From Octopus sinensis (lineage: Eukaryota), in NCBI RefSeq assembly GCF_006345805.1, contig NC_043013.1:13268001-13332000 (forward strand): a stretch of DNA of 64,000 bases, written 5' to 3'. The translations under genes were made by a program, and so were the position numbers. Under the pieces are notes generated by a model. That model saw nothing but the letters and a program-made list of their open reading frames with translations. It had not been told where the DNA came from and searched no databases. How positions within the stretch are numbered: the first letter of the stretch is position 1; every line of letters starts with the position of its first letter. Below are positions 4,768 through 64,000 of the stretch, piece by piece.

Positions 4768-4804
4768 TGACTTACTTGATGAATATTTCGAGCAACTAAA
4801 AAGA
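4768..4804 (+). CDS. Micro-exon B1 (37 nt, phase 2->0): DLLDEYFEQLKR
   Basis: Context acatattttgcAG|TGACTTACTTGATGAATATTTCGAGCAACTAAAAAGA|GTaagt. It completes the A1 codon (AG+T) with no stop, and its flanks are homologous to B2 and B'. Confidence 0.68.
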
Positions 4805-8497: not shown

Positions 8498-8501
8498 TAC
8501 A

Positions 8502-8549
<48 letters not shown>

Positions 8550-16470: not shown

Positions 16471-16744
16471 ATTAATAATTTGAAATGCAGGATATATATA
16501 CTTGTGTGCATGTGTGTGTGTGTGAGTGCATACGCATGTGTGAACTGATCTATTTTACGGTATAATTTCTTTTTGCCAGTTACCTCTTTCCAACTTCCGT
16601 CTTAATTTCTTCTCTTTCTTCGCCTCTCACCTTTTATCTCTGGCTGAAACACCTTTTGTCTATTCCTCATGCTAAGTTTAAAAGTAAAGACTGAAAATGG
16701 TTACTGTAGTTCGCTGGAAGCATTGTATATTGTTTTTGAAATGT

Positions 16745-18523: not shown

Positions 18524-18551
18524 ATCAGCTGACGATTCATGGCTAGAAAAT
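18524..18551 (+). CDS. Micro-exon B2 (28 nt, phase 2->0): SADDSWLEN
   Basis: Context ttttctgattttgcAG|ATCAGCTGACGATTCATGGCTAGAAAAT|GTaagt, in frame with A2 and A3. Confidence 0.68.
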
Positions 18552-19173
18552 GTAAGTCATTTAAAACTTTCATGTATGCTTAATTAGTTCTGTTTGTATA
18601 AATTATGATGAAATTTTTGTTGAGAATTTCATCAATGCATTTGTATAAAAGGAATTTTGTATATCCTGTTTATGAATATTTTTATATATTTTCTCATCTT
18701 GGTACAAGCTACTATTTCTGATACTGGTAGCCCAAGCTATGATTCTTCAGACGGGAAGACCTAACTACTATTTTCCAATAAGTAGAACTGTTTGCGTTAT
18801 CTCCTATTGGTAGATCCAGCAACTATATTTCATATATTTACAGCAGTCTTCTATGTTTTTAAATATTATTATGGTCAGTGTATTAGTTTCCATTTTAATA
18901 TGGCTGGATACTATTTATAATATTAGAAGAACCAGCTACTGTATACCATATTGTTAGACCAGGCTAGTATTTTTGATATTTGAATAAGTTGCTAGTTTTT
19001 ACATTATACAGGTCTTTGAAAGAAAAGTTTCTGAAAACTGTTTTGATAATTTTATGTTACTTCATAGAATGTTTGTGGTGGTCATTTGAAATATCAAAAT
19101 TACTCTTTCCTATCACTTAATGTTTTCCTACAATCCAATGAGAAGAGAATATCATAATCTGTAGATAAATACA

Positions 19174-19826: not shown

Positions 19827-19858
19827 GAACCTGAAATAGACCAACTATTCACAAAAAT
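19827..19858 (+). CDS. Micro-exon A3 (32 nt, phase 0->2): EPEIDQLFTK
   Basis: Context ctcttattttcAG|GAACCTGAAATAGACCAACTATTCACAAAAAT|GTaatg. Flanks at 19390-20380 are homologous to the other A modules. Confidence 0.62.
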
Positions 19859-21524: not shown

Positions 21525-21624
21525 NNNNNNNNNNNNNNNNNNNNNNNNNNNNNNNNNNNNNNNNNNNNNNNNNNNNNNNNNNNNNNNNNNNNNNNNNNNN
21601 NNNNNNNNNNNNNNNNNNNNNNNN
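21525..21624. other. Assembly gap (exactly 100 N, size and orientation across it uncertain)
   Basis: Run of 100 N. Confidence 0.99.
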
Positions 21625-28276: not shown

Positions 28277-28440
28277 CTCTTCATTCACAAGGGATTCCTT
28301 GTTTTGTACACAGTTCCATGATGCAATACCTATTGTTACCACTTTCTTCTTGCCAGTCATTGCAGCTTCATTATCATGTATAGCCTTCCCAATATGTTTT
28401 GCAACTCCAGTATGTAAGCCATCACTTATGATCCAGGCAC
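28277..28440 (-). CDS. TRPM: TRPM-like channel, SLOG/MHR1-2 exon (164 nt, phase 1->0): (G)AWIISDGLHTGVAKHIGKAIHDNEAAMTGKKKVVTIGIASWNCVQNKESLVNEE
   Basis: Matches the TRPM motif GAWIITGGxHTGVMKxVGEAV...TIGVAxWG, with canonical ttttgcAG and GTaaat boundaries. Confidence 0.88.
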
Positions 28441-34121: not shown

Positions 34122-34302
34122 CTGTGATTTGTGCAGCTTTAACCAAACCACGCCCAAGAGCTTCTCTAGCAAATGGATCCAACTGAAAGTCTTGTCTTTC
34201 TCCAATCACAGAAATAAGTAAGTTTGGCAATGATGAATACCATAGGCGTTTTATCAAATTAATTGTAATTTCCATAGAGATTTGGTGATCCACACGGACA
34301 AA
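34122..34302 (-). CDS. TRPM: TRPM-like exon (181 nt, phase 0->1): FVRVDHQISMEITINLIKRLWYSSLPNLLISVIGERQDFQLDPFAREALGRGLVKAAQIT
   Basis: Matches TRPM YVRVS.DT....LM...W.L..PNLLISVTGGA.NF...RGLVK.A. Boundaries ctctcgtacAG and GTataa; phases fit both neighbours. Confidence 0.88.
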
Positions 34303-35454: not shown

Positions 35455-37420
35455 ACATCATCATCATTTAATGTCCATTTACCATGCTAGTGTGAGTAGG
35501 ACGATTTGAGGGGGACAGGCAAATCAGAAGACTACACCAAGCTCTTCAGTTTATTTTGGCATGGTTTCTACAACTGGATGCCTTTCCTAATGCCAACCAC
35601 TTTACTGAGTGTACTGGGTGCTCTTTACGTGACTGCAGCAACCATGAGGTCACCAAGTAACTTGCAGTACAAGACCCCCTCAAATGGAGTGTAAGATGTA
35701 GTGTGGAGGGAAGTTGGTTCAGTGAAGAGGGAAAAGCAAAGGTAATTTGATAGCATTGAAAAGGTGGGGGATACTCAGTGTAAAATAAGAGTGGAGAGGG
35801 ACAATGTTAAGGATCAAGCATCGACATAAAATGAAGCAGTTTTTGGTAGTAAGAAAGATAACTGATATCACAGAAGGGTAGATGATATATACATTTATTT
35901 TCCCCAGTTAACTATAGCAGCAAAATATTGCAGTTAGGAAAGTGATGGAGAGAGCAGTGATAGGAAAATGAAGGGGGTGAAAGTTTTATGAAGAATTTAA
36001 GTGAGGTAGTGGTAGAGTATTCATAGACATTATGATTCTAGAACCTTTGTTTATTCAAGATGTGTGGCCTTCTCAAGCACCGCATATGGTCAGGTGTCCT
36101 CTTTGTCATCTCTGTGAAATTTAAAGTTCTAAGATCACTATTTCATCTCATGTCAACCCCAATCTCCCTTTTCCACAAGTTCCATCGATTTTCAGTAACC
36201 AGCATTTCGTTATACAGCTAACCTCACCCAAAAGCATCCATGAACATATTCGTACAGTCTTGAACAAAACATCGATTCCTTTTCTGCTCACATTTTTCTC
36301 AATATGTTTGTACATTATTGTTCATATAGACAGATTTTATACATCTTCGCATATCCACTGTGTTTAGAGTCCACATCTCATTACTATGTCTATGTAGCAC
36401 TGTCGTTCGTACATAATCATCATACCATCAGTTTTTCATTATGAGAGAAATGTTTTGTTACCAACAAAAGGTAAAACTCCTTCAAATTTCTCCAGCTTCA
36501 TTTTTTTTCTAGTCGATATAATTTCCGAACAACACCATCTCCACTGCTATGTAATAATAACTATCTTTTCTGTCGAAGGATCATCCTGGGCATTTCACAA
36601 AATCTATTTCCCATGTACATATAGAATTGTTTTTGCATGTGTATCAGCTGCATATGAAGTTTACTTTCTCTATTAAATTGTCTGTGATACTATGCAACTC
36701 CTGTGTTTCTATAGTTTTCACTGAGGACACTGCGTGGAATTTATTTCTAACAGCCATTCTATACAGGGTTTGTGTGGCTATCACAAGCCATTTGTCTTCT
36801 GCTATCTCCCTCTGTAACTACCATCATAGAATAAGGATCTCTGTCAAAGGTTTTCTGCAGGCCAATGAATGTTCAGTAGAGAAGCTTACTTTTAACTAAA
36901 TGCTTCTGCAGCAGTTACTTCGCCAAAAAAGAAAAGACTTCTCTAGTACTTGTCCCTAATAAAAAACCAAACTATATCTTGTCTAGTGTAACTTTTTCTC
37001 TAATTATTTGAGCTGTAGTTGTTCCCATAACTTTGTCCAGCTATTTGATACTTCTGTGATTACCTTTCTCTAGTATCTTCTTTATCCTTGTGATAGTCGG
37101 TTGTAATAATGTAATGCCTGTCACTGGGCAGACCACTTTCCTGTATAATCTGATTGACTATACAAGTAACTAAGCCATAACCCACACTGCAAATTATTTT
37201 AAACATTATAGCAGTCATTCCTAATGGTTCATGGAGTTTTTCCTGCTTTTATATTCTTCAGTATTTTATTTATGATACTGCTACCATCTAGAATTACTAG
37301 TCCCTCTGTTGGGTCCATATTTGAAAGACCTTTCTTTCATGCCATCTCCACATATATGAACCTTTAACGAGGTCACCTTTACACTTCTTTCTTTTCAGAA
37401 TCATTAAGTGCAAGTGTACT
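35455..37420 (-). mobile_element. Highly decayed RTE LINE fragments and RTE-type 3' tail
   Basis: 35455-35700 matches the reverse complement of the RTE 3' UTR at 57660-57880. 36000-37420 carries RT-like remnants. Confidence 0.55.
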
Positions 37421-37627: not shown

Positions 37628-37712
37628 CTTTGCAATATTCCAACCATCTTCTGGAAACTTTACCTCACCAAATGCATCACAGGGTTTTGATAGCTCTTTA
37701 TCTGTAGCGTTT
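37628..37712 (-). CDS. TRPM: TRPM-like exon (85 nt, phase 2->0): (R)NATDKELSKPCDAFGEVKFPEDGWNIAK
   Basis: PCDAFGEVKF matches TRPM PTDAFGDIxF. The acceptor tttctgtttgtctttgatAG gives phase 2; a weaker AG 11 nt downstream would give phase 1. Donor GTaatt. Confidence 0.8.
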
Positions 37713-38217
37713 CTATCAAAGACAAACAGAAACCAAATGAACAACTGAAATAAAGTTGTGATGGGGAAGGTAGAAAAAGAAAGATAACAAAATCAAGAGA
37801 AAAAGAACAACTCCAATGAAAGATACAAAGTTCCACAGATGTAGATACATAAATCCATTCATGGAAGTAAACATCTTTTAATTTAGTTAAATAAAATAAT
37901 GATTCATTTTAAATAAACTGAAAGGAATACAAGAAGTTATTTTACTGTCAGAAGTAAATGAAGAAAATGGGGTACACAGTCGAATAGTGATTCTACATCT
38001 GGGATGGTGCTTCTGCTACACATACAGGTATCATAAGACAACATCCAGAAAAAGGTTACTCAATTGACTGGCATGAAGTCACCAATATACATCAAATTCT
38101 GACACACAGATGTGCTGTGTCTTCTCTTTGCCTTTTCAACCACTACTAAAATAGCCTCTGCGTCTAAGAGCTAGTTAGTCTCTTGTAACCCTACCTGGAT
38201 ATCATTGATACACACAC

Positions 38218-39535: not shown

Positions 39536-39573
39536 CTCAATTTTATGTTTTCCTGCATCCATTTCTTTATATC
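39536..39573 (-). CDS. TRPM: Micro-exon A4 (38 nt, phase 0->2): DIKKWMQENIKL(R), splicing in frame into the TRPM exons
   Basis: Context tttattttatttcAG|GATATAAAGAAATGGATGCAGGAAAACATAAAATTGAG|GTaata. Flanks at about 39400-40230 are homologous to the A1-A3 modules, and the peptide resembles TRPM2 SWIPENIKKK. Confidence 0.75.
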
Positions 39574-45677: not shown

Positions 45678-45859
45678 AACTATACATATATAAATTCCTC
45701 TATTTACCTAATATTGGGGTCTCATTTATTTGTTGTCATTTTATTATTGTCATTTTTTCCTTCTTTCTTCAAATTTTCTTCCGTTTCTCGCCAAGTGTTT
45801 TCCGCACACCTAGGGCAGAGAAGCTCATTGTATGCATTCCCAGATTACACATGCAAATT

Positions 45860-46608
45860 CACAGGTAGAATATGTATTTAAAAATTAATAAATAAATAAA
45901 TTCATGAATTGATGTTTTCACAGCGATAATGCTCTTCTCAGTACATGAGCCGTTCCAGTTAATACGAGTTTTTGCAATTCCTGTAGGGATGGTAAACCTG
46001 GTATCATTTTCAAATAGGTTTCTGTACCTTTTTTTATCATTCCTAGAGGTCCTACAATCACTGGTACAGTAGCCGCCTTGAGATGCCACATTTTTTTCAA
46101 TTTCTATTAGCAAGTCTTTATATTTACTGATCTTGTCAAATTCTTTCGCCGCTATATTCTGATCGCAAGGAATACTCATGTCAATTAATAAACACATCCT
46201 TTTTGTCTGATCTTTTATAATAATATCCGGTTTATTAGCTTTTATAGTTTTGTCAGTATGTACGGTGAAGTCCCATAGAATCGACACATTTTCTCCCTCA
46301 GTCACAGCTTCAGGATGGTGTTTATACCATTTGTCAGCGGTTTTGATTTTATAATGCCGACATATTGTCCAATGTAAATACTGGCCGACTCTGTCATGTC
46401 TTGCTTTATATTCTACAGGTGCTAAGACTCTACACCCTGAGATTAGGTGGTCTATAGTTTCAATCTCATCGTTACAGAATTGACATTTTGGGTCAGCTCC
46501 ATTTTTTATCACATTGGCTTGATAGTTCCAGGTTAATAAGCTTTGGTCTTGAGCAGCTAATATGAAGCCTTTACTCTCTGCTTTTAGCCCTGAGCTTCGT
46601 AAGTGCAT
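45860..46608 (-). mobile_element. R4/Dong-type RLE retrotransposon 3' fragment
   Basis: ESKGFILAAQDQSL; CQFCNDEIETIDHLISGC..LA..Y..RHD; ANKPDIII...LIDMSIP..(PD..D/E.K endonuclease). Confidence 0.88.
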
Positions 46609-47431: not shown

Positions 47432-47480
<49 letters not shown>

Positions 47481-47510
47481 GCGAGAAAGAAGCAACAAGA
47501 ATGGATAGGT

Positions 47511-47601
47511 TTTTAGTACGATCGTTTCATACAAGGACAGGTTTTATTAAAAGTTGCAAAGATTACAGCATATAAACGAGTCCCGTACTCATCAGCTAAA
47601 A
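47511..47601 (-). ncRNA. Type I hammerhead ribozyme (mirror copy)
   Basis: Exact reverse complement of 54761-54851. Confidence 0.8.
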
Positions 47602-50496
47602 TACATGTAAGTTCTCTAGACATCCTAGTGTTTGAGGCTATACTCATGAAGTAATGTAGATAATTAAACAGATTTCTAAAGTTCATTAAAGTTCTTTAAA
47701 GATGATGCATAGTCTTATCACAGAATTTTAAAAAAGTTTTGGTAGCATCACAGAGAAGGTGACCTAATCCATATGAATTTCCATAGATATGATGAGGGAT
47801 TATATACTCACAGAAGACAAATTTATCCATTGTTATTAGCATTACAGAGAGGGTGAATTAATCCTTTGTATATATGCACAGATTCCAATGGTGTAGATGT
47901 AAATTTCCAGAGAAATGGAGATGAATTTCATATTCACAGGCGATAAATTTTACAATGGTTGAACACAATGAGGTAGGTACCAATCCTTGTTATATGATTA
48001 GGTGTTTGCCATATTAATCACATTACTGCTATTCACAAGAGGCTGCAGCTATTTAACTCTTAAAGGTTGAAGGGCTTACTAGATCGGCCAAGAATAGAGA
48101 AGGGAATAGAAGAAAAGAGAGAAAATAATGGAGGAGGGAGCAAAAAAGGGGGGGGAAAGGGGGACTAAAAGAGAAGAGAAAAGGGAACAGAGAATAAGAA
48201 GAAGAAAAAGAAAGAGAAAAGAGAAAGGAATAGGGAAAGAAGGGAAAAAAAGAAAAAGAAAAAAGAAAAAAGAGGGTTCTAGTTATACAGAAGAGCTAGT
48301 AGACTGTAAGTCTGGTTTTAATCAACAGGCATCTGGGAACTGGAGGGGAATATTATTATTCTTTGACCAGTAAACCGTTAATTTATTGCTGTTGAAATCA
48401 GCCATGAGTTTAAAGAGAATCTAAAGAGATAACACAGTCAGGGGTTAAGGGGTCAGATGCTAAAATCACCAGAAAATACATTAGGAAAATCTAAGTATAA
48501 TCTTATCAAAAAGTCATTAAAAATTTACTTATTTAATTTATTCATTTTATTGTCTTAAGGAGTTGTCGTTATTATTCATACATTGACCGACTACAGGTCA
48601 AATCTTATAAGATCATTTACAAGGTGTTAGGGGATTGTCTATCCTAATGAAGATAATCATATTATCACCGAGGGAATAGCCTTATTTATTTAATTATGAA
48701 ATAGAATTATGGGGCTACAGTAACTAATTATAATTTATTAGAGTTATGCTATTTAAATTAGATTAAGTTAGGAATTAAAATTAAATATTACAATTAAGAT
48801 TTAAAATTAAGAATTTAAAAATTGTGAGTTTGAAATTAAATAAAGCCTCAATTAAGTAGCGAATAAGCACTATTCATTTCTCTGTTCTCAAAAAACTGAT
48901 GTAGATATAAGGAAAAAGATAAAGATAACTGTAATGTGAGAACTCTTAGTTATCTACTTAAAGCAGTGCTATACTAGTAGAAATCAAGTTATATCTATCT
49001 ATCTAGCTATGAATATTCCAATCATTTAAAATATTTTAAAGTCTTCAATTTAGCGTGGACACAAACTTGACCTAGTTCGATATGGTTATTCAATAAGTTT
49101 CTATGTTTACTATGCTTTAGAATTTCGTACGTCTCCATGGAGCATAGTTGACAACCAACCCTACTATTTTTATACGGAATTGCTCTCCTAACTATTTCCC
49201 AATTAAGGGTATAATTTTTGTTATTATTTTTGAGTTCCCAGATTTTGTTTGAAAGTGTGGTGGTACCAGCTTTATGACGTAATTTAAAAGTCGAGATGTG
49301 ATTTCTAACTCTGGCTAAAAAATTAATTGTACAGCCAATGTAAAAATATTTGTTATTCTCCGTGGATATGGTACATTTATAGATTACATTATTTTCCCTA
49401 CATAGACCAGGTGCCGGGCATTTTGATTTTATTCTACACTTACACACAGGAGGAACAACTTCAGGCCTTGGATTATTCCTGGGTAGATGTTTAAGGTTCC
49501 TATTATTTTGATTATCATTTCTATAGTTGGTACTGATATCTAAAGTATTGTTATTATTTATTGATCCTTCCGTTTCATCATTTAGGCGTAAAGTCCTACC
49601 AAGATTTCTTATATTATTCGTAATGTTATTATTATTGTTAGTCTTTTTATCCAACTGTATATTATTGTTATAGATATCACTGATATTTTCATTCTCCTTA
49701 TTTTCTCCATTAGCCTTATTTCTATTATTTCTATTATTAACAATATTACTTCTATTAATATCGGCATTGTTATTATTACTATTAATGTTAATGTTATTAG
49801 TCATTCTGTGGTTACTAATTTCACCTATGTTTTGATAGTTCCTATTGCTGTTTTTATTGTTGGTAGTATTATTGTTATTGCTATTGGTATTCATTCTGAT
49901 ATTATTATTTTTATTTCTATCTTTCCTGGCTAGTTTAATGTTGTTATTATTAATTTTAGCTATTAAAGTGGACATATTTGGGAGGGTTGAATAAGAAATC
50001 CTAACTGTTTTCCTAGAAATAATTCTATGATATCTATGAGAGATAGGGAAATTTTTTTCCAGAATTACTTTGAATTTGTTCTGTATATCCGATTGTATCG
50101 CACAGTTGAAAGGAATATTCAGCCATAATATATCTTTTTTATAAAATTTAGGGTTCGTAGAATTACTACTATTCATCTCACCGGAGTTATTGTATTTATT
50201 ACCATTATTTTTATTTTTATTTGTGTGCATCTTAGGTTTATCTACTTCAATCTTATCCGAGTTACCTATGTTCTGGTCAATGCTTCTATTTGAATTGTTG
50301 GGCCTGTACTCTAGATTGGCGTTTACCGTTAATTTAATTCTACTTTTATTTCGGGTTTGGTCTTTTTTGCTGCTTACTTGATTACTGATAACTTCATTAT
50401 TAGGAATACGTGAGTTCTCCCTATCAACGAATGTAATCTTTTGGTTGTATCCAGCCTTAGTTAACGCCGCATTATAATGCTCAGAATGGGAGTTAA

Positions 50497-53340
50497 ATGA
50501 TTAAAGTAAACATTAAGTTCTCCCCTAAAGACATCCCCTTACATAGTATAGATGAATATAATTGGCTTCTCATTCATAGGATTAACGATTTCATTAGAAG
50601 AATCAGGTGGAAAACGTACCATTTTGATGTCAAACAGAAGAAGAAACCTCAGGAAATGAATACCGAAAAGAATTTTAGAAGAATTTTTAAAAGTAGAAAA
50701 AGCCCACCTCAGAACCCATTCCTGGAGAACTTTGAGAAAGACCTGCTGAATCTTATAGATGATATTAGCTTCAATGAACACCCGTTAAGATATAACCCTC
50801 ACCTTAGACACCTTAGGAACTTTATTCAGTCAACCCGGTGCAAACATGGAATCCTAGTACCAGCAGATAAAACGGGTAATATGTATAGAGTTGATTACGA
50901 TATTTATAGCAAATTAATTAGGAAAGAACTAAACTCCAAATATAAAATTACAACTAAGAACAATTTGAAAAAAGTAAACATGGAAATGAAAGAGATCATG
51001 GAGAAACTAAATTTAACAGATAGAACGGAGCCACTTAAACCCTGTGAGCCCAGGATCAACCTTAAAGACCACAAAAAGGACTTCTTGGATAACCCTTCAG
51101 TAAGGCTGATCTGTCCAACTAAGTCGGACATTGGCCGACTTAGTAAATCTATCCTGGATACTGTTCTACCCCAAATAACCCCTCTTCTCCCCTTAAACCT
51201 ATGGCTAAGTACCGACGAAGTTCTAAAATGGTTTAACTCTCTAACTAATACTAGTAGTCTGTCCTTTATTCAGTTCGATATTAATAGTTATTACTCTAGC
51301 ATTTCCCCTATCTTACTCAACAAATCACTAATATTTGCCATGAATCGCTCCCTCATAACTAGAGAAGAAATCAATATTGTGCTACTAGCTAGGAAGACAT
51401 TTATTGAATTTGAAGATAAATTATGGACTAGAGCAGATACACCAAATTTTTTTGATATACCAATGGGTTCCAGTGATTCGGCTGAGGTAACCAACCTAGT
51501 AGGCGCATATCTATTAAAATGCATAAGCAAGGATATCCCAGAAATACAGGGGGGTCTATATAGAGATGATGCTCTGTTTGTTATCCCTAGTAATAATAAA
51601 TCTGTTATAGAAAGGATTAGAAAGAAAATTAATAAGTTCTTTAAGGATTTCAACCTCAGTATAACGTATGAACCGGGCACTAAAATAGCTAATTTCCTAG
51701 ATATTACCCTAGACCTTAACTCCAAGCTACATTACCCATTTAGAAAGGAAGGCGAAGTCACGAATTACGTAAATAAATTATCAAATCATCCCCCAAATAT
51801 AATAGAATCTTTAGTAAGAAATATTTCATTAAGAATTTCAAAATTATCATCCAATAAGGATATATTTAACTCCCATTCTGAGCATTATAATGCGGCGTTA
51901 ACTAAGGCTGGATACAACCAAAAGATTACATTCGTTGATAGGGAGAACTCACGTATTCCTAATAATGAAGTTATCAGTAATCAAGTAAGCAGCAAAAAAG
52001 ACCAAACCCGAAATAAAAGTAGAATTAAATTAACGGTAAACGCCAATCTAGAGTACAGGCCCAACAATTCAAATAGAAGCATTGACCAGAACATAGGTAA
52101 CTCGGATAAGATTGAAGTAGATAAACCTAAGATGCACACAAATAAAAATAAAAATAATGGTAATAAATACAATAACTCCGGTGAGATGAATAGTAGTAAT
52201 TCTACGAACCCTAAATTTTATAAAAAAGATATATTATGGCTGAATATTCCTTTCAACTGTGCGATACAATCGGATATACAGAACAAATTCAAAGTAATTC
52301 TGGAAAAAAATTTCCCTATCTCTCATAGATATCATAGAATTATTTCTAGGAAAACAGTTAGGATTTCTTATTCAACCCTCCCAAATATGTCCACTTTAAT
52401 AGCTAAAATTAATAATAACAACATTAAACTAGCCAGGAAAGATAGAAATAAAAATAATAATATCAGAATGAATACCAATAGCAATAACAATAATACTACC
52501 AACAATAAAAACAGCAATAGGAACTATCAAAACATAGGTGAAATTAGTAACCACAGAATGACTAATAACATTAACATTAATAGTAATAATAACAATGCCG
52601 ATATTAATAGAAGTAATATTGTTAATAATAGAAATAATAGAAATAAGGCTAATGGAGAAAATAAGGAGAATGAAAATATCAGTGATATCTATAACAATAA
52701 TATACAGTTGGATAAAAAGACTAACAATAATAATAACATTACGAATAATATAAGAAATCTTGGTAGGACTTTACGCCTAAATGATGAAACGGAAGGATCA
52801 ATAAATAATAACAATACTTTAGATATCAGTACCAACTATAGAAATGATAATCAAAATAATAGGAACCTTAAACATCTACCCAGGAATAATCCAAGGCCTG
52901 AAGTTGTTCCTCCTGTGTGTAAGTGTAGAATAAAATCAAAATGCCCGGCACCTGGTCTATGTAGGGAAAATAATGTAATCTATAAATGTACCATATCCAC
53001 GGAGAATAACAAATATTTTTACATTGGCTGTACAATTAATTTTTTAGCCAGAGTTAGAAATCACATCTCGACTTTTAAATTACGTCATAAAGCTGGTACC
53101 ACCACACTTTCAAACAAAATCTGGGAACTCAAAAATAATAACAAAAATTATACCCTTAATTGGGAAATAGTTAGGAGAGCAATTCCGTATAAAAATAGTA
53201 GGGTTGGTTGTCAACTATGCTCCATGGAGACGTACGAAATTCTAAAGCATAGTAAACATAGAAACTTATTGAATAACCATATCGAACTAGGTCAAGTTTG
53301 TGTCCACGCTAAATTGAAGACTTTAAAATATTTTAAATGA
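50497..53340 (+). CDS. Intact 947-aa PLE polyprotein: N-terminal domain, RT, thumb, two Asn-rich linkers, Cys-rich linker, GIY-YIG endonuclease (Neptune/Nematis-like)
   Basis: FSPKDIP..RRIRWK; FIQFDINSYYSSI; PMGS; GLYRDDAL; NFLDITLDL; CKCRIKSKCPAPGLC; VIYKC..YIGCT; CQLCSMETYEI. Confidence 0.95.
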   Translation: MIKVNIKFSPKDIPLHSIDEYNWLLIHRINDFIRRIRWKTYHFDVKQKKKPQEMNTEKNFRRIFKSRKSPPQNPFLENFEKDLLNLIDDISFNEHPLRYNPHLRHLRNFIQSTRCKHGILVPADKTGNMYRVDYDIYSKLIRKELNSKYKITTKNNLKKVNMEMKEIMEKLNLTDRTEPLKPCEPRINLKDHKKDFLDNPSVRLICPTKSDIGRLSKSILDTVLPQITPLLPLNLWLSTDEVLKWFNSLTNTSSLSFIQFDINSYYSSISPILLNKSLIFAMNRSLITREEINIVLLARKTFIEFEDKLWTRADTPNFFDIPMGSSDSAEVTNLVGAYLLKCISKDIPEIQGGLYRDDALFVIPSNNKSVIERIRKKINKFFKDFNLSITYEPGTKIANFLDITLDLNSKLHYPFRKEGEVTNYVNKLSNHPPNIIESLVRNISLRISKLSSNKDIFNSHSEHYNAALTKAGYNQKITFVDRENSRIPNNEVISNQVSSKKDQTRNKSRIKLTVNANLEYRPNNSNRSIDQNIGNSDKIEVDKPKMHTNKNKNNGNKYNNSGEMNSSNSTNPKFYKKDILWLNIPFNCAIQSDIQNKFKVILEKNFPISHRYHRIISRKTVRISYSTLPNMSTLIAKINNNNIKLARKDRNKNNNIRMNTNSNNNNTTNNKNSNRNYQNIGEISNHRMTNNININSNNNNADINRSNIVNNRNNRNKANGENKENENISDIYNNNIQLDKKTNNNNNITNNIRNLGRTLRLNDETEGSINNNNTLDISTNYRNDNQNNRNLKHLPRNNPRPEVVPPVCKCRIKSKCPAPGLCRENNVIYKCTISTENNKYFYIGCTINFLARVRNHISTFKLRHKAGTTTLSNKIWELKNNNKNYTLNWEIVRRAIPYKNSRVGCQLCSMETYEILKHSKHRNLLNNHIELGQVCVHAKLKTLKYFK

Positions 53341-54760
53341 TTGGAATATTCATAGCTAGATAGATAGATATAACTTGATTTCTACTAGTATAGCACTGCT
53401 TTAAGTAGATAACTAAGAGTTCTCACATTACAGTTATCTTTATCTTTTTCCTTATATCTACATCAGTTTTTTGAGAACAGAGAAATGAATAGTGCTTATT
53501 CGCTACTTAATTGAGGCTTTATTTAATTTCAAACTCACAATTTTTAAATTCTTAATTTTAAATCTTAATTGTAATATTTAATTTTAATTCCTAACTTAAT
53601 CTAATTTAAATAGCATAACTCTAATAAATTATAATTAGTTACTGTAGCCCCATAATTCTATTTCATAATTAAATAAATAAGGCTATTCCCTCGGTGATAA
53701 TATGATTATCTTCATTAGGATAGACAATCCCCTAACACCTTGTAAATGATCTTATAAGATTTGACCTGTAGTCGGTCAATGTATGAATAATAACGACAAC
53801 TCCTTAAGACAATAAAATGAATAAATTAAATAAGTAAATTTTTAATGACTTTTTGATAAGATTATACTTAGATTTTCCTAATGTATTTTCTGGTGATTTT
53901 AGCATCTGACCCCTTAACCCCTGACTGTGTTATCTCTTTAGATTCTCTTTAAACTCATGGCTGATTTCAACAGCAATAAATTAACGGTTTACTGGTCAAA
54001 GAATAATAATATTCCCCTCCAGTTCCCAGATGCCTGTTGATTAAAACCAGACTTACAGTCTACTAGCTCTTCTGTATAACTAGAACCCTCTTTTTTCTTT
54101 TTTCTTTTTCTTTTTTTCCCTTCTTTCCCTATTCCTTTCTCTTTTCTCTTTCTTTTTCTTCTTCTTATTCTCTGTTCCCTTTTCTCTTCTCTTTTAGTCC
54201 CCCTTTCCCCCCCCTTTTTTGCTCCCTCCTCCATTATTTTCTCTCTTTTCTTCTATTCCCTTCTCTATTCTTGGCCGATCTAGTAAGCCCTTCAACCTTT
54301 AAGAGTTAAATAGCTGCAGCCTCTTGTGAATAGCAGTAATGTGATTAATATGGCAAACACCTAATCATATAACAAGGATTGGTACCTACCTCATTGTGTT
54401 CAACCATTGTAAAATTTATCGCCTGTGAATATGAAATTCATCTCCATTTCTCTGGAAATTTACATCTACACCATTGGAATCTGTGCATATATACAAAGGA
54501 TTAATTCACCCTCTCTGTAATGCTAATAACAATGGATAAATTTGTCTTCTGTGAGTATATAATCCCTCATCATATCTATGGAAATTCATATGGATTAGGT
54601 CACCTTCTCTGTGATGCTACCAAAACTTTTTTAAAATTCTGTGATAAGACTATGCATCATCTTTAAAGAACTTTAATGAACTTTAGAAATCTGTTTAATT
54701 ATCTACATTACTTCATGAGTATAGCCTCAAACACTAGGATGTCTAGAGAACTTACATGTA

Positions 54761-54851
54761 TTTTAGCTGATGAGTACGGGACTCGTTTATATGCTGTAAT
54801 CTTTGCAACTTTTAATAAAACCTGTCCTTGTATGAAACGATCGTACTAAAA
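54761..54851 (+). ncRNA. Type I hammerhead ribozyme in the PLE 3' pLTR
   Basis: TTTTAG-CTGATGA-GTACGGGAC...GTCCTTGTAT-GAAAC-GATC-GTA^CTAAAA. Stem I is 6 bp, stem II about 9 bp, and stem III is minimal with a palindromic GATC loop. Confidence 0.82.
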
Positions 54852-55903
54852 ACCTATCCATTCTTGTTGCTTCTTTCTCGCTTATAATCACCCCACATTA
54901 CTGTATTGTTAAATCAGTATAGTTTTTTTTTTTGGTGCATCTAAGTTAGGTACCATATTCAAGTAAATTTTTTTAAATTAACTTGAATCTTTATTGCTCT
55001 TTGTATATATATATATATATATATCATCATCATCATCGTTTAACGTCCGTTTTCCATGCTGGCATGGGTTGGACGCTTCGACCGGGGTCTGGGAAGCCAG
55101 GAGGCTGCCCCAGGCTTCAGTCTGATCTGGCAGTGTTTCCACAGCTGGATGCCCTTCCTAACACCAACCACCGGAAATAAGGAGGAGACAAGGTTATTGG
55201 GGTTTTGTGATGCTCATGGCTTACTGGTCTGTAACACTAACTTCAGAAAACCAGCCAACCATTTATCAATCTGGGGGTTACACCAGTCAGATTGACTACA
55301 TCCTCACCAGACACAGGGATAGATATATGCTCATAAATGCAAAATCTTATCCAGGTGAAGAATGTACAACTCAGTATAAGCTAATGGTTGGTGACTTCAG
55401 GCTTTGGGACAGAAAGATCCAGAGACACAAGCCAATATCGAAAAAAAGTTGTAGAAGCTTAAGGATTCTCAAAGAGGGCAAAAATTTAGATATGTCCTTA
55501 ATGAGGCCTTTGATGAGAAAGAAGAAGCGGCAAAGACATGACACAGAGAACAACTGGAAGTTCCTACGGAAGAGCAACAGACCAAGTTTTTGGTTGGTTA
55601 CAAAGCCTCATCCAGACCAATGATGATAGATATATGTGGTGTAGAATAGTGACGTTGCCATGGCCATAAAACAGAAGAGATGGGTCTAGAGAGAGTGGAA
55701 AAGAAAGGGTGGCAAAGAATCATGTCAGAAAGCTAAACATCAGGTATCTAGCAAGGGTAGAAGTAGAAAAGACTAGAGACTGTAAATGTTCTGGATTGCT
55801 AGACAATTTGCCAGAAGGAATCGAGACAATGTGGGAGAGACGTGTGTATGGATGAATAATGTGAACAAGAAGGATACATGGAAAAGTTACTGAAATTTTC
55901 TCA

Positions 55904-55970
55904 TTTGCTGATTTTGCAGATCACTTGATATATTTTGGCGAAAAATTGTAAGTCTTTTAAAATTCCTATA
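55904..55970 (+). repeat. Inverted copy of micro-exon B' with its splice sites, embedded in the RTE LINE
   Basis: 65/67 nt identical to the reverse complement of 58728-58794; the 28-nt exon part (55920-55947) is identical. Confidence 0.9.
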
Positions 55971-57880
55971 GGGCCAGCTATCCTAGTCAACAGCAGTATG
56001 GTACAGAAAGCAATTAAAGGCATGTAAACTGGTCCATCCGTAATTACTGACTAGATACTCAAATTATCCAGTAAGGTAGGATATGGACTTGTCACCCGCA
56101 TATTTAGTCAGGTCATTCAGGAGGGTGTAATGCTCAGTGACTGGCATAGCAGCTTTATTGTTAGCTGCTACAAGGGTAAGGGTTATGCTTTTGATAGAAG
56201 CAATTATAGAGTCATCACACTCCTAGACCAGGCGAGGAAAATTACGAAGAGAATTATAGCCCTATTAATTAGGAGCTTAATTAGCCTAGACGAAATGCTG
56301 TTCGGTTTCTTCCGGGGAAGAAGCACTACCGATGTTATTTTCTTAGTCAGGCAAACTGAAAGAGAAGTACTTAGCTAAGAATAAACTAATACATTTGGCA
56401 TTCGTTGATTTAGACAGAGTCTTTGATAGAATACTCTGCTGTGTAATATGGTGGGTTCTGAGGAATTGAGTGATAGATGAGTGGCTTGGAAACGCTGCAC
56501 AGGCTAAGTACAGCGATGCTATTAGTAAGGTGAGAGTTAACCACGAGTACAGTGAAGAATTGGTGTAAAGGTTGGTGTTCATCAAGGCTCATTCCTCAGT
56601 CTCCTCCTTTGCATCATTGTCCTCCATGCCATAACAAAGGAATTCAAAACCGACCACCCCTGGGAGTTGCTATATGTTGGTGATCTTGCCTTTATAGCAG
56701 ATTCCATATCAGAGCTGGAAGAGAAATTACAAGTTTGGTAGCAAAACCTGAAAACTAAAGGATTTACGGTAATCTTAGCAAAGACTAAGATCTTAGTAAG
56801 CGAGAAAACAGTCAGGATGCTACACACTTCATGTAGGTGGCCCTGCTCGATTTGTAGGAAAAGTGTAGGCAAGAACTTCATATGTTGCACTCAGTGTAAG
56901 CAATGGACCACACATGAGGTGCAGTAGATTAATAGGAAGTTTATTGGAGGCAGACGTGTTTGTATATAGAAGATGTACATGATCCATAAAAATTACTGAA
57001 ACTCAGGAAATTGATTCTTCCAAATGCTGTGGAGGCTCGTTAGAAGTAGTAATTTCTGATGCCTATCAGATCAAATTAGTTGTGAGGGGATGCACAAAGT
57101 GTGTGATGGTTAGAATATGAATAGGATGGAGGACATTCAGTGAGATTTTACCTCAGTTGGCTAGGAAAGGTTTCTCTCTCCGAGTAAAAGGTAGACTGTA
57201 TGATGCGTGTACATGGAGAGTAAATACATGGTAGTGAGATGTGGGTCTTAAATGCAAAGGGCATGTGAAGGTTTGAGAGGAATGAGGCAAGTATGCCCCA
57301 CTGGATGTAAAATATAAGTGTACATGTTCATCAGAGTCCTAGTGTTTTGAGAGAGAAGTTAGGCATAAGAAGAATTAGATGGAGTACACAAGACAAAGAG
57401 TGTGCTGGTTTGGTCATATGATGCAAATGGATACTGACAGCTCCATAAAGAAGTGCCGATCTCTTATAATTGATGGAACACGTGGAAGTGGGAGGACCAG
57501 GTACACATGGGACGAAGTACTGAAAAATGACGTCACGAGGTTTAAATTTTCAGACGAGATGACAAAGGACCTAGATGCCTGGCACCTTATTGTACTTAGG
57601 AAGACCCCACCCCTCATCAGAAGTGATGAAGTCACTTCCCCCGAAAGAGACGAGTGTTCTGCAAGAGTCCTGTGCTGATGCCAGGTAAACATGCTTGTGC
57701 AGTTCCACTTAAAACACCCATCACACTCTGTAAAGTGGTTGGTGTTAGGAAGGACATCCAGCTGTAGAAAACATGCCAAATCAGACTGGAATCTGATGCA
57801 GCTCTCCAGCTTGCCAGCACTGATAAAACCGTTCAACTCACGCCATCATGGACAATGGACATTAAATGATGATGGTGACA

Positions 57881-57930
<50 letters not shown>

Positions 57931-58237
57931 TATGTGTGTGTGTGTAAAGATTTTTTACGAACATAATGTGACAATCCTGATTTGGACGAATGTTACTGTT
58001 ATTTAGCCACAGGAAACATGGTCTCCAGCTGGCTAACGACGCACTATTCCCTTTCAAATAAGGGAGCTTAATGTCCTCACTCAGCTCAAAGCAATATCTG
58101 TGTATCAATGCTTTCAGGTTTATTTCCCTTCATCAACATAGAATAACTGTTCGGCTAGAGATGGCGACACTAGTCACTTGTTTGATAGATATACTTTTCA
58201 AAGTGACATAAAATAACTGATCTCAAAAATAGAAATA

Positions 58238-58305
<68 letters not shown>

Positions 58306-58329
58306 TATAATAATGATAATACATATATA

Positions 58330-59300
58330 TATATATATATATATTTATGGCTCTACTAATATGTGATATAGTAGCTGCAAATACTAAAAGCAGTATCCAA
58401 CCATACTAAAAGAAAAACTACTACACTGGCCATAATATTATAATAAATAGAAGCCTACTGTAAATATATAAAATATATAACACATATATATAGATCTATC
58501 AATAAGACAGTTCTACTAATTGGAAAAATAATAGATGGCTCTTCTAGTCTGAAGAATAATAGTTTGGTGTATCAGAATAAAAAAATAATAACTTGTACCA
58601 ATGTGTGAAAATATATAAAAATATTCATAAACAAGATATACAACATTCGTTTTATATAAATTCATTGATGAAATTTTCAACAAAGTAGTCATCACAATTC
58701 ATGCAAACAGATCAAGCGAAAATAAAATATAGGAATTTAAAAAGACTTACAATTTTTCGCCAAAATATATCAAGTGATCTGCAAAATCGGCAAAAAATAG
58801 AAGAAAAATTGTTTTTGTATGAAATGGAATAAAGGAAATGTAAAAGGAACTAAAATTTAAGGAATTATATGGCATTTGAAAAGTTATACCAAGAGAAATT
58901 GATTCAGTCAGAGATGAAGGGTGAGAGGTAAGCAAAGAATAAAGGTAAGAATTTAGAAAGAGGTAATTTCTCAAAGAAAGACAAGTAGTAATGTGATGAA
59001 AATTCCTAAGAGTGGCAGAAAAGGTGGAGAAAACGCTATGTGACAGAGGCAAGTGACAAAGATAAGGAATCAAACCATAAAAAATAGATCTATTCACACA
59101 CTCCCTCACACATGTACATTTACAACTTTACCAATATAAAATAGGTTATTAAATAAATATATCAAATCATATCCATGTATATTTAGCGTTTCTGTAAAAT
59201 TATATCCAATGAGGGCTCAGCCATTTAGGATAAGAATCAAACTTGGCAGTTTCATAGATACTTTGCAATTCAACTAGATTCACAGAATCCATATGGCTAA
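58330..59300 (-). repeat. Intron module B, inverted paralog (homologous to 4370-5040, 16540-16720/18440-18960 and 21067-21190)
   Basis: Reverse complement aligns by eye with the B1 and B2 flanks and with segment C. Confidence 0.85.
58751..58778 (-). CDS. Micro-exon B' (28 nt, phase 2->0): SLDIFWRKI
   Basis: Context ttgccgattttgcAG|ATCACTTGATATATTTTGGCGAAAAATT|GTaagt. Same length and S-x-D-x-x-W pattern as B2, and phase-compatible with A4 downstream. Confidence 0.68.
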
Positions 59301-59339: not shown

Positions 59340-60560
59340 GCTGCATTTGCTTCATCTTATGCCCAACTTTTCTCTCAATACGTTTGCACTTTGTCATATA
59401 TGCACACTGATATTGCACTTTCCCCCAGTCTACGCATGTTGTCTATATTCATAGCCATTCATAGCCCATGTCTCGCTACCATGGAGTATAGCCATTCGCA
59501 CACAAGCATCATTTAATCTATTTTAACTCTGAGAAAGAGAGAGTCCTTTTCTTGCCAACAGAAGTAATAGTTCTCTGAACTTCCTCCATCCTATTCTTAT
59601 TTTGAAAACAATATTTTCAGAGCATTGCTAATTTGGTCACCTAGGTAACAGAAAATATCTACAACCACAAGAGAGCCTCCTGCGCATTTGAGAGTATCCA
59701 AGTCCCCTGTGCTTTTAGAGATTATTGTTCCTGCACATGTCATATACGAAGACTTTATTTGTTAATCTACCTCTGATTCCACTACGCCTCTTATGTGTCC
59801 CTGACTTACACTGGATGTAATGAATGGTATTACTTCCCACTACTTTCCTACAAAGTGACCAATTTAAATGATGGAAATAGAATCTTATCTGCTTTCTTGT
59901 TAACAATAACTTTGCTCTTTACTAGGTTAACTTTAAGGCCTTTGATTCTAGGTTTTTCTTCTGTACCTGAAATTTCTTCTCTAGTTCTACTATTGATTCG
60001 GCCAGAAGACCAAGATCATCAGCGTATATTAGTTTTCTTTAGCATCCAGCTTTGAATTCCTCAGTTATGGTCTGGAGGACTATAATGAAAAAGTGTGGGC
60101 TGAGAACTGAACATTGGTGAACCCCTACTTGTATGCTAAGTTCCTCACTGTATTCATGGCCGACTTCACCTTACTGACTGCATCACTTACAGGGCTTGTG
60201 CATCTTTAACGAGTCACTGATCAATTCCTAACTTCCTTAGACACCAGCAGATAACAAAGTGGGGTATCTGTCGAAAGCTTTCTCCAGGTCAATGAAAGTT
60301 AATTTGGGCCAAATACGTTTCCTGCAGCTGTTTCATTTGGAACATGGTATCTGCGGCAGGTACAAAACAAAACTGCATCACATCTAGACTAATTCTATAC
60401 CTAATCAACTGAATTATAACCTTCTCAGTAACTTTCATGACCTGGTCTAGCAGTTTGGTACCTTTGTAGTTGTTTCTATATAAGGCATCACCTTTATCCT
60501 TGTTACAGCTAACTATAATACTACTACATCAGTCATTGAGGATGGTGTCTTACTGAATAA
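59340..60560 (-). mobile_element. Decayed RTE LINE fragments (59340-59530, 60170-60560)
   Basis: Remnants read ..CVRMAILHGSETWAM.. and KLLDQVMKVTEKVIIQLIR..FIDLEKAFDR. Confidence 0.65.
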
Positions 60561-61500
60561 CTCGATTAACTATACAGGTGGTTAGGCTGTATCCTACATC
60601 ACCGTTCATTTTAACTATGACATTCAATTACAAAATGTATGGTACGTAGTATAGCAGTCTGGAAATATTGCAATCTCTCTCCTCCCTCTCCAGCGAACAA
60701 TACAAAATGCTGGTGAGCCAACAATCTATCAAGCTGCCATGTCTATGTAGTGTACAAGAACAGCACTTTCAGATACTAATTTTCCATGTAAGATAGTAAG
60801 AAACATGGCCCCTAAATAGATTGAAAGTGAAGCAACATCTATCAACCCCATATTTTTTGCCAACAACACTGGAGAGCATTAAATACAGTCACTTATAAAA
60901 CACATACATACACAACACACACAAAATATTACGGTTCTTTGAACTGTGACAAAGACAAATTATTGGTTGAAATGGATATAATTATTAGATAGTCTGATAC
61001 AGGAAAGATGGTTGCTGAGATGCCAGAGTTCAGTATTGTAAACATCAGACCTCTACACCAATACAACTCCATATTTGTTGGCTCCTTTGACAATAGTGCA
61101 GTGTCAAAGTTGTCAATGGTAAGGTGCAATGAGCTCCATCAGAATAATATTGATATATCTCAACTCCTAGTTTCAAAAGCAATCTTAAGAAAGCTGGTAC
61201 ATACTGATTGATAGATTCAACAATTTTGAATTGACCAAGAGCTCTCTTAGTGCTAATATTTTGCATAATAAAATTGATATTGAATAGACTAGTTTTCCAC
61301 TTCAGAACCAAAGAATATTTCATCTCATCAACTTCAAAAACCTGCTATTAAGCTCAGGTGAACCCAAAATATATGTAATTCTCATATATGGGATGTTATA
61401 GTTGCTACACACACAGATATCCTGAAACATATGAAAAAATATCCACGTGACTGATTAACTAGAAGGTACTCAATGAACGTCTAATCCAGAGACATGCAGA

Positions 61501-62500: not shown

Positions 62501-62594
62501 GTCCTAGAGCGCACAATGTTCCTGAAGGTCAACAATGATCTTCCTTGGTCACGAACAGATGGCAATCATTTATAAATATATATATATATATTAT

Positions 62595-64000
62595 ATATTT
62601 ATCTGGATTGTAATACCTTTTGGAAAACAAATTAAATCGAACCTTCCCTTACAGTTCCGTGAAGCCGTTGCTAGGAACTTTCCCAGAAATTCTAGATATC
62701 ATTCTATTATCAATTCCCACAAGGTCAGAATAGCTTTCTCTAACACTAGGAATCTTTCACAAATTATATCTTCCCACAATAACAAGCTGTTAAACAAAGA
62801 TTCTTCACCCGGGAGTTCCAACACTAATCTTGCCAATTCCAACCCATTATACAATCATAATAATAGGAATAGTATTAATAGTAGCAGCATTAGTAGCAGC
62901 GAAAGTGTTAACAATGATAATAATAATAGTATTAGTCATGTTAATAACAATGGTAGTGTTGATGGTAACAACAATAACGGTATTATTGTCGGTGGTATTA
63001 CTGGTTGTAATGCCATTAATAATACTAATAATAATAGAAATAGTGTAGTTGTCAGCGCTAATAATAATGGTAACAACAATCATAACAATAAAAACTTCGT
63101 CTCGATCTCGGAGGACAACCCCAACAGAATTAAATTTTTGTCTAGTAATTCTAAGATTAAGAATTCTGTTTACCAGTGTAGAATTTCTTCCGGTACCGAT
63201 GTCTTCTTCTATATAGGAGCGTCCACTTCCCAGTTATCAAAAAGAATTTCAAACCACTACTCAACATTCAGGGATAGTAAAAAACGACATAGCACATGCC
63301 TAAGTAAATTAGTTTGGCGTCTCAAAGACAACAATATAATTTTCAAGTTAGATTGGTTCATACTGTCTGTATCCTTTCCTTTTGATAAGGGCAGGAGATT
63401 TTGTAACATTTGTAACTCTGAACTCTTCGATATTATTTTCTCTAAGGTTCCCCTAGTAAACACACTCATAGAAAAATCGTACAAATGTAAACATTGGCAG
63501 AAACACACTTTCTACTCATATAAATGATAACGATAGTCACTGTGGTTTGAACAATTAGCTTTACGTCCACCCAACTGCTATAGAGAAATTCTTTCAATCA
63601 ATGTACCCTTCCCTCTCCAATTGTTCCCTACATATTATTCATTTATACCTTCTCTTCCAACTATCTATCTTTGACGTCTGTCTCTCTCTCTCTCACACAC
63701 ACAATCACACACACAGACACAAATGCAGTTATACACACACACATACACACACACAAACACACGCACTCATTAACACAAGCACACACCCACACATTTCCAT
63801 GCATACAGCAAACGTACTGTTCCCTAACTATCACTACTTTATCCCTTCTCTTCCTACTATCTATTTTTGACGTCTATTCTTCTAACGGTTTAAAAAAAAA
63901 ACACTCATTATCGCTTTGTTTACCATGTAGGCAATCATCGAAATTTTTGTTTGTCTTCTTGTCGAGAGAGGCTCCCTTTCTTTCCTGATGAGAAGATTGC
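62595..64000 (+). mobile_element. Second Penelope-like family: 5'-truncated thumb/Asn-rich linker/GIY-YIG plus 3' tail; probable hammerhead core start CTGATGA at 63985, cut by the window edge
   Basis: WIVIPFGKQIKSN...; SVYQCRIS..FFYIGASTSQLSKRISNHYSTF; FCNICNSEL; CKHWQKH. Confidence 0.88.

Follow-up and report, generated by a model that had tools for sequence, protein, structure and literature searches.

Class 2 templated sequence insertions (TSI; templated sequence insertion polymorphisms, TSIP), as described by Onozawa and Aplan, are patches derived from distant, often transcribed or intronic sequence, and they come with microdeletion and microhomology (PMC5110952). Break-induced replication that is mediated by microhomology (MMBIR) leaves a signature of its own, namely an inverted orientation to a nearby copy together with microhomology at the junctions (PMC8421209). 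Sequences which pair with an exon are also known from RNA editing; these editing-complementary sequences (ECS) are recognised by their conservation, and coleoid cephalopods edit extensively (PMC5705066). Here we analyze a 78-nt patch, termed S, in a 64,000-nt stretch of the Octopus sinensis genome (contig NC_043013.1, positions 13,268,001 to 13,332,000; this whole stretch is called the window). S sits inside a decayed long interspersed nuclear element (LINE), LINE-A, in an intron of a minus-strand gene with TRPM-like SLOG modules. It contains an inverted copy of an exon-like unit of the same intron, which we call U3 and which a preliminary description of this DNA called B'. In our judgement S is likely to be a recent, lineage-private templated repair patch, which came from a sister paralogue of U3 and created intronic double-stranded RNA (dsRNA) by accident.

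The window was compared with two loci, one from O. vulgaris (OX597830.1; L001) and one on an unplaced O. sinensis scaffold (L002). L001 is collinear with contig 2 of the window across 42 kb. Where the window carries the 78 foreign nucleotides, both loci have 65 nucleotides of native LINE sequence, which are identical in the two. This native segment (ATGCAAGAG...CAACAGA, between ...AAAAGTTACT and AGGGCCAGC...) covers ~22 codons and reads WKSYYARVVNAENE-stop-DKG.. The preliminary description had noticed that the copy replaces about 25 codons of the LINE between ..WKSY and GPAIL..; the two empty sites confirm this, and the count was close. The LINE sequence to either side of S can be aligned with L001 and L002 at an identity of 98-99%, and the region of S is also unlike the related element LINE-C. 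At the joints (left GTTACT/GAAATTTTC, right TTCCTAT/AGGGCC) the LINE sequence resumes in register. The bases CT (55890-91) and A (55970) can be assigned to either the LINE or the donor, which corresponds to a microhomology of 1-2 nt. Inspection of the joints against the empty sites revealed neither a target-site duplication nor a poly(A) or A-tract.

A polarised three-way comparison over 18 kb yielded private substitutions of ~1.0% for the window (without S), 0.6% for L001 and 1.3% for L002. S is the sole dense block of window-private differences in this comparison, and no mutation shower was found near it within the 18 kb. Because L001 and L002 both retain the native LINE sequence at this position, S is, on the evidence of the alignment, a derived replacement, which appears to be very young and private to the lineage of the window. 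These properties resemble those of class 2 insertions, in which a break is filled by a patch of distant, transcribed and possibly intronic sequence whose donor stays intact, with microdeletion and microhomology, with no target-site duplication or poly(A), and in a lineage-private or polymorphic manner. An empty site in relatives and an inserted sequence that is unrelated to the target, by which such insertions are identified, are both found at S. The locus differs from class 2 in that S was not simply inserted but took the place of 65 nt. Furthermore, the type of donor is known by sequence, while the actual copy is absent from the window, L001 and L002, and S happens to be an inverted copy of a paralogous unit 2.76 kb off in the same intron.

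It is conceivable that S is an artefact of assembly or polishing and not truly at this locus in the animal. The patch occurs in one assembly, on a scaffold that is joined discontinuously at a 100-N gap, and the multi-copy LINEs and paralogous modules that abound here may mislead read-based polishing. However, S lies deep within the contig whose 42 kb of collinearity with O. vulgaris were mentioned above, both junctions are clean with the LINE back in register, and an internal substitution of 78 nt is untypical of a chimera. We regard an artefact as quite improbable.

The relation between S and U3 was evident from a repeat search, which identified two inverted arms of 67 nt with 97% complementarity and 2757 nt between them (arms 1 and 2 in Table 1). 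Direct comparison of the plus-strand arm with the reverse complement of the other arm gave 65/67 identical positions, and BLAST returned the pair with an E-value of 1e-27. The arms have the layout ttttgcag/ATCACTTGATATATTTTGGCGAAAAATT/gtaagtc, with an acceptor part of 16 nt, the core of 28 nt and a donor part of 23 nt. The core occurs exactly twice in the window, at 55920-55947 on the plus strand and in U3 on the minus strand; the number expected by chance, with 3 mismatches permitted, was 0 in 100 shuffles. Read on the plus strand, S reproduces a U3-type unit in sense orientation, with acceptor flank, 28-nt core and donor flank, and it is antisense in the minus-strand pre-mRNA. The inverted copy with 65/67 matches, its division into 16, 28 and 23 nt, and its position about 2.8 kb downstream of B' in the minus-strand pre-mRNA had all been given in the preliminary description; they proved correct, the distance being 2.76 kb and the intron being the same by the gene models.

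The co-folding of the two arms, which had also been proposed there, resulted in a very stable duplex that spans both splice sites. The predicted energy is -94.8 kcal/mol, compared with -14.5 +/- 3.1 for shuffles. The duplex persists in the minimum free energy (MFE) fold of a 3201-nt RNA, where 65/67 long-range pairs are formed, i.e. every complementary position. Only two positions are mismatched, 58789/55909 with C.A and 58739/55959 with U.U. According to this folding model, the pre-mRNA of the haplotype with S can form a 67-bp, 65/67-paired duplex, which buries acceptor, core and donor of U3. The gene models place both arms in one pre-mRNA, and co-transcription is read from these models.

The next question concerns the template of S. 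U3 of the window is identical to U3 of O. vulgaris in 115/115 positions; this includes its rearranged upstream flank and both bases in which it differs from S. On the other side, S holds 15 nt of extra ancestral acceptor flank (CTGAAATTTTCTCAT), which U3 is without. The distal acceptor flank of S (30 nt) matches the related micro-exon unit U2 (B2 of the preliminary description) in 28/30 positions, and the homology to U3 ends upstream of -16; the earlier remark that this flank is nearer to B2 than to B' is borne out. At both positions of mismatch between S and U3, S has the state shared with U2 and U3 does not. The exon core is identical between S and U3 (28/28). Since U3 already had its present form before the split between window and L001, and S arose later and nevertheless has the ancestral flank and bases, S was not copied from U3. 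Judged from these bases, the template must have been a sister U3-type unit elsewhere, which would have carried the CTGAAATTTTCTCATTTGCTG flank and was situated most plausibly in another spacer of the tandem array. The term templated insertion, which had been used for the copy, hence needs a correction: a templated replacement inside an old LINE is what we find, while the template would be a sister paralogue and not B' itself.

The same evidence bears on a local template switch of the MMBIR type, or by fork stalling and template switching (FoSTeS), in which the resident U3 would have been copied in inverted orientation from 2.76 kb away. Such a switch could account for the orientation and the junction microhomology, and U3 is the closest available match with 65/67. 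It does not account for the 15 flank nucleotides and the two bases of S which are not in U3 and which were missing from it before S arose; with U3 as template one would need an unlikely long-lived polymorphism. S is like MMBIR/FoSTeS insertions in being inverted relative to nearby homologous sequence and in having microhomology at both joints, and it differs from them in that U3, which is the sole copy nearby, is excluded as template. We consider this mechanism very improbable.

For a repair patch from a sister paralogue we infer the following course of events. A break or gap in the decayed LINE-A would have caused the loss of 65 nt of LINE sequence. This gap would then have been closed by 78 nt that were copied from a U3-type unit, a sister paralogue in the tandem array of TRPM-like SLOG genes, with DNA or a cDNA derived from pre-mRNA serving as the template. 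The joints, with their microhomology of 1-2 nt, would be of the end-joining type. In this way the patch would have settled antisense to the host gene in the same intron, 2.76 kb downstream of the resident U3. The resulting intronic dsRNA would be accidental; it may act as a broad substrate for ADAR and as an extra suppression of an already unused, frame-breaking pseudo-exon, and both effects would be incidental and not selected. The hints at an RNA or reverse-transcribed intermediate are only circumstantial: the copied sequence is intronic and exon-like and comes from a transcribed family, and a Penelope-like element (PLE) lies 882 nt away.

The preliminary description treated B' as a micro-exon. 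U3 has splice signals, namely a polypyrimidine tract with CAG, and GTAAGT. Its peptide, SLDIFWRKI, was present in no retrieved protein, and it is without the acidic ..DD.SWLE.. signature of U2-type exons (SADDSWLEN, SADDSWLAN, PDDKSWLET). A net deletion of ~63 nt just upstream of position -16 took out a branch-like TACTAAT motif, which is kept in U1 and U2. The U-type exons of this family are 28 or 37 nt long and run from phase 2 to phase 0; the R-type exons have 32 or 38 nt, run from phase 0 to phase 2, and have a shared acceptor context and a gtaatgc donor. A single exon of either type shifts the frame, which is kept by pairs of R and U only. Neither the window nor 17 kb of the corresponding O. 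vulgaris sequence has an R-type partner upstream of U3. The gene model of O. vulgaris splices past U3, which shares a single 30-kb intron with the LINE site. Spliced after the annotated upstream exon of O. vulgaris (...TTC AAA G/gtaag), U3 reads DHLIYFGEKLI-stop. This combination of sequence features and gene models argues that U3 is an orphan relic or pseudo-exon, which appears to be unused in the models. The missing peptide, the skipping, the missing R partner and the stop on inclusion all speak against B' as a used exon. The suggested recoding of its I/K codons is not supported either; the reading in frame 2 needs the absent upstream R-type exon and has no established coding context.

The preliminary description put S forward as a candidate ECS or exon-masking element, which would pair with B' and direct A-to-I recoding, destroy the acceptor AG or hide B' from the spliceosome. 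The very stable duplex over both splice sites and the position of both arms within one annotated intron are consistent with such a role, and coleoids are heavy editors (PMC5705066). Of the adenosines in the duplex, 28 are on the S arm and 19 on the U3 arm, where 13 have U or A as a favoured neighbour on the 5' side. Were U3 a poison pseudo-exon, with GTAAGT and CAG signals that are both perfect, there would be a benefit in masking it. The expected conservation was not found, however; O. vulgaris and the second O. sinensis scaffold have the native LINE instead of S. Furthermore, the duplex is near-perfect and not selectively bulged. Long near-perfect stems, like those of inverted Alu pairs, are edited broadly by ADAR and not site-selectively. 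S is also transcribed 2.76 kb after U3, which would give splicing a head start, and recoding in frame 2 would again require the absent R-type exon. Masking explains nothing that requires an explanation, because U3 is already skipped in O. vulgaris, which is without S. An evolved role of S as an ECS or in exon masking is unsupported by these comparisons, and we hold it to be unlikely.

S can also be compared with described elements. In common with the ECS of ADAR targets (GluA2 Q/R; insect Syt1) and with the editing-inducer hairpin of Gabra-3 (PMC3479170), S is an intronic sequence downstream of an exon-like target, with which it can pair in cis. Known elements of this type show conservation, pair imperfectly and act on a coding site that is known to be edited (PMC5705066), whereas S is private and 97% paired, and its target is no demonstrated exon. 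Inverted Alu pairs in primate introns (PMC13019027, PMC13019944) are similar insofar as they are young, repeat-derived, near-perfect intronic dsRNAs, which may sway exon use as a by-product. They differ in that the Alus flank an exon and loop it out with a stem of ~300 bp; here one arm is itself the exon-like unit with both splice sites, and the stem has 67 bp. That S is a newborn, possibly polymorphic cis-antisense patch, which silences the frame-breaking pseudo-exon U3 and/or acts as a seed for hyper-editing by ADAR in a neuronal TRPM-like gene, has in our estimate only a slight chance of being correct.

A further possibility is that the hairpin is a nascent source of hairpin RNA (hpRNA) or endogenous small interfering RNA (siRNA) against U-type exons of paralogous genes. 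Loci for hpRNA and young microRNAs arise by inverted duplication of fragments of their target genes, and the stem of 67 bp is near-perfect. The coding exons U1 and U2, however, are only 54-64% identical to the core, which is too diverged for targeting by siRNA, and the stem is intronic with a loop of 2.76 kb. We consider this source of small RNA extremely unlikely.

Several points weigh against the interpretation of S as a repair patch with accidental consequences. S is known from a single assembly, and the search for a donor copy, which covered the window, L001 and L002, found none. The relationship between L001, L002 and the window is mosaic in the three-way comparison, which makes the term orthologue approximate; the argument on polarity holds for paralogues too. 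The non-use of U3 is read from proteins and gene models, and an inclusion at low level or in specific tissues may occur. The 28/28 identity of the core between U3 and the type of donor of S could hint at a constraint on U3-type units. Finally, the lack of conservation is compatible with a newly acquired function of S.

Table 1. Positions of S, its paired unit and the surrounding elements and exons in the window.
Feature	Position	Strand	Remarks
S, foreign 78-nt patch	55892..55969	+	From empty-site alignment with L001 and L002
Arm 1	55904..55970	+	Portion of S complementary to U3; 65/67; pairs with 58728-58794 in the MFE fold
Arm 2	58728..58794	-	U3 (B') as acceptor (16 nt), core (28 nt) and donor (23 nt); U3 of O. 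vulgaris agrees at 115/115 positions
U3 (B') exon-like core	58751..58778	-	28 nt; frame 2 SLDIFWRKI; orphan paralogue of U2-type micro-exon
U3 long unit	58352..59101	-	~750 nt; its flanks share homology, at 73-78% identity, with the intron sequence surrounding U1 and U2
LINE-A	55200..57700	+	Decayed non-LTR retrotransposon hosting S; antisense to the gene; broken frames and stops; orthologous copy at L001 47161-49636
PLE in (TA)n tract	47450..55010		7.4 kb; two inverted arms; 882 nt from S, same intron
U1 micro-exon (S)DLLDEYFEQLKR	4768..4804	+	37-nt core; exact match to XP_036366207.1
U2 (B2) micro-exon (R)SADDSWLEN	18524..18551	+	28-nt core; linker of convergent LOC115221041; exact match to XP_036366207.1
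R3 exon DIKKWMQENIKL	39536..39573	-	38 nt, running from phase 0 to phase 2; first exon that can be recognised downstream of U3
E_c exon (R)NATDKELSKPCDAFGEVKFPEDGWNIAK	37628..37712	-	SLOG module; acceptor gatag/A set by P0003
E_d exon FVRVDHQ...VKAAQIT(G)	34122..34302	-	SLOG module
E_e exon (G)AWIISDGLHTGV...SLVNEE	28277..28440	-	SLOG module

U1 and U2, the two older copies of the unit on the plus strand, are genuine coding micro-exons, as their place in proteins shows. An exhaustive profile search led to Octopus proteins, and one of these, XP_036366207.1 (P0002; O. sinensis LOC115221041), ends with ...KDEMDCSDEES DLLDEYFEQLKR KDDKDSSEEDR SADDSWLEN EPEIDQLFTKM. Five pieces of this linker map exactly to the plus strand of the window (3172-3203, 4768-4804, 10253-10284, 18524-18551 and 19827-19858); the related minus-strand units are at 39536-39573 and 58751-58778. 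U1 and U2 occur in series in proteins of O. vulgaris and O. bimaculoides also, and in O. bimaculoides the linker is constitutive in isoforms X1-X3. The three long units U1, U2 and U3 are 81-100% identical in their splice-site motifs, 76-85% in an intronic block at +46 to +165, and 54-64% in the core; in self-comparison the copy in S (~80 nt) is far shorter than any of them. Going by these alignments, the acidic linker before the SLOG module consists of alternating paralogous micro-exons, a pattern that evidently came about through tandem duplication of a two-exon unit with its introns.

The preliminary description had taken B, B2 and B' for a cluster of alternative exons. This is not the case, as U1 and U2 co-occur in series in one protein, where they alternate with R-type exons. 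The related idea of mutually exclusive exons, which was based on unit lengths that are all 1 mod 3, is ruled out by the serial arrangement of U1 and U2 in the proteins P0002, P0001 and P0007. We also rejected the view that the U units are cargo of a Helitron or another transposable element, which was raised by the inverted orientation of U3 relative to U1 and U2 and by the recurrence of the R blocks; these blocks carry the partner coding exons. The resemblance of the U1 peptide EYFEQL to the LINE motif W.EYFE.LLN is taken as a coincidence and not as a sign of an exonised LINE, because the flanks are without LINE homology and the native LINE is unlike S.

The intronic block mentioned above has ~120 nt and lies 46-165 nt past the U-type donors (U1, 4845-4965, +; U2, 18590-18712, +; U3, 58595-58715, -). 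It is conserved to 76-85% compared with 54-64% for the exon core, and it contains GTGATGA/ATGATGA and a TGATGAAAT...ATTTCATCA hairpin. The block could be a splicing enhancer for the micro-exons. RNAalifold predicted weak hairpins with no covariation from the three sequences. A small nucleolar RNA host gene, which the GTGATGA/ATGATGA motifs had suggested, was discarded; Rfam gave nothing across the window at gathering thresholds, and only noise with E>2 at relaxed ones. The upstream flank of U2 is split by an element of ~1.65 kb with inverted terminal arms of 81-83% identity (16754-17279 and 17860-18404), and the distal flank resumes at ~16580-16651.

The host gene was recognised from TRPM-type exons on the minus strand, which were found by reading stop-to-stop segments. 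The host exons match TRPM4, 7, 3, 5, 2 and 8 in the PDB with E down to 1e-23, and the Pfam domain PF18139 (LSDAT_euk, 'SLOG in TRPM'; N-terminal and homologous to TRPM MHR1/2) with E=1.5e-27. Related proteins are named TRPM2-like or TRPM4-like by NCBI. RefSeq has a gene on the plus strand and then, after 8.4 kb, the 3' end of a convergent minus-strand gene (1423 aa, four SLOG modules), the end of which is E_e. The TRPM-type exons and this RefSeq gene agree with the minus-strand host that had been proposed for B' and its copy. The interval of 19 kb from U3 to R3 contains S. A transmembrane channel domain was not found in the window, which holds only residues ~55-205 of one module.

Neighbouring models string together three or four truncated SLOG modules, and a member that contains transmembrane segments occurs in O. 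bimaculoides (P0007, which continues towards the transmembrane region). In O. sinensis and O. vulgaris, models of 200-250 kb (P0001, P0002, P0005 and the 1423-aa neighbour) chain truncated SLOG modules without the channel domain. As far as the exons and models allow us to judge, the locus is a tandem array of 'SLOG-only' TRPM2-like units beside or upstream of a full-length member. A survey of cephalopod TRP channels reports, for each species, about one TRPM of the alpha and one of the beta kind and does not mention the array (PMC13402157).

Two O. vulgaris models (CAI9735598.1 and CAI9735606.1) have R3 in another frame (GYKEMDAGKHKIE), and they use an upstream acceptor of E_c (LFIWFLFVFDRNATD..; tttcag/TTG) or skip E_c. 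The positions compared for R3 and E_c were 58018-58055 and 59829-59954 in L001, and 39536-39573 and 37628-37745 in the window. The frame conserved among paralogues is DIKKWMQENIKL(R)NATD... The divergent O. vulgaris models are probably annotation artefacts, which result from the phase-1 end of the last exon in the preceding module. A VRECV peptide near 59.1 kb was rejected as the KREC exon of TRPM; it stems from a GT microsatellite, and its position does not fit the exon order.

The window also contains the 100-N gap, at 21525-21624. Both convergent RefSeq-type models end by reading into the intron beside it, the plus-strand model with ..EPEIDQLFTKM-stop at ~19860 and the minus-strand model with ..SLVNEEVNFCLSYFPYF-stop at ~28244. 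L001 and L002 extend the minus-strand gene past the equivalent of 21625, and the next SLOG exon follows after ~0.66 kb. One strand carries both the linker and the module behind it in O. bimaculoides. This suggests that GCA_006345805.1 is mis-joined or mis-oriented at the gap, or that the gap marks a real rearrangement.

LINE-A has a Pfam RVT_1 domain downstream of S (E=1.3e-10) and two relatives in the window, LINE-B and LINE-C. LINE-B (-) and LINE-A (+) flank U3 and constitute a weak inverted pair with 64% identity over 1.1 kb. The PLE has two arms of 3023 nt each (47476-50498 and 51864-54886), which are identical in 3022/3023 positions and separated by a spacer of 1365 nt. Its open reading frame (ORF; 50497-53340, 947 aa) has a GIY-YIG-like C-terminus and gave no Pfam match. 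The element is absent from L001 and L002, both of which have an intact (TA)n empty site, and it is private to the lineage. In the pre-mRNA the PLE would be predicted to form a perfect 3-kb hairpin 0.9 kb from S, a far larger dsRNA than the duplex of S; the arrangement of the PLE may also be a palindromic long-read artefact. It is speculation that S and the PLE, as two private events, are linked, for example by reverse-transcriptase activity at the break.

The window is dense in transposons, with further elements, LINE-B and LINE-C among them, at 522-998 (+), 3987-4289 (-), 5798-8502 (-), 11537-14120 (-), 37060-37420 (-), 45859-46608 (-), 59502-60618 (-) and 62535-63527 (+). The transposon content includes a fragment of a Helitron-type PIF1 helicase (Pfam E=1.8e-42), a second GIY-YIG-like ORF, and several non-LTR elements with endonuclease and reverse transcriptase domains, one of them a nearly intact pair of 457 and 226 aa. 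A search for homologous proteins gave no matches for the LINE or TRPM pieces.

As it stands, S is probably an ordinary by-product of DNA repair, which creates an intronic inverted repeat and adds a new instance to a known type of event. The analysis also removes a tempting but unsupported claim on ECS and recoding, it identifies the B, B2 and B' units as members of an alternating linker of R and U micro-exons in the octopus array of TRPM-like SLOG genes, and it draws attention to a probable fault in the scaffolding of the O. sinensis assembly. If S is indeed a newborn silencing or editing-seeding patch, the window with S and the loci without it (of the L002 type and O. vulgaris) would represent a natural allelic series for the birth of masking or ECS elements from repair patches in an animal with heavy editing. 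Should the patch prove real and polymorphic, a coleoid would offer a clean natural test of how a new 67-bp duplex that covers an exon affects editing and the use of splice sites.

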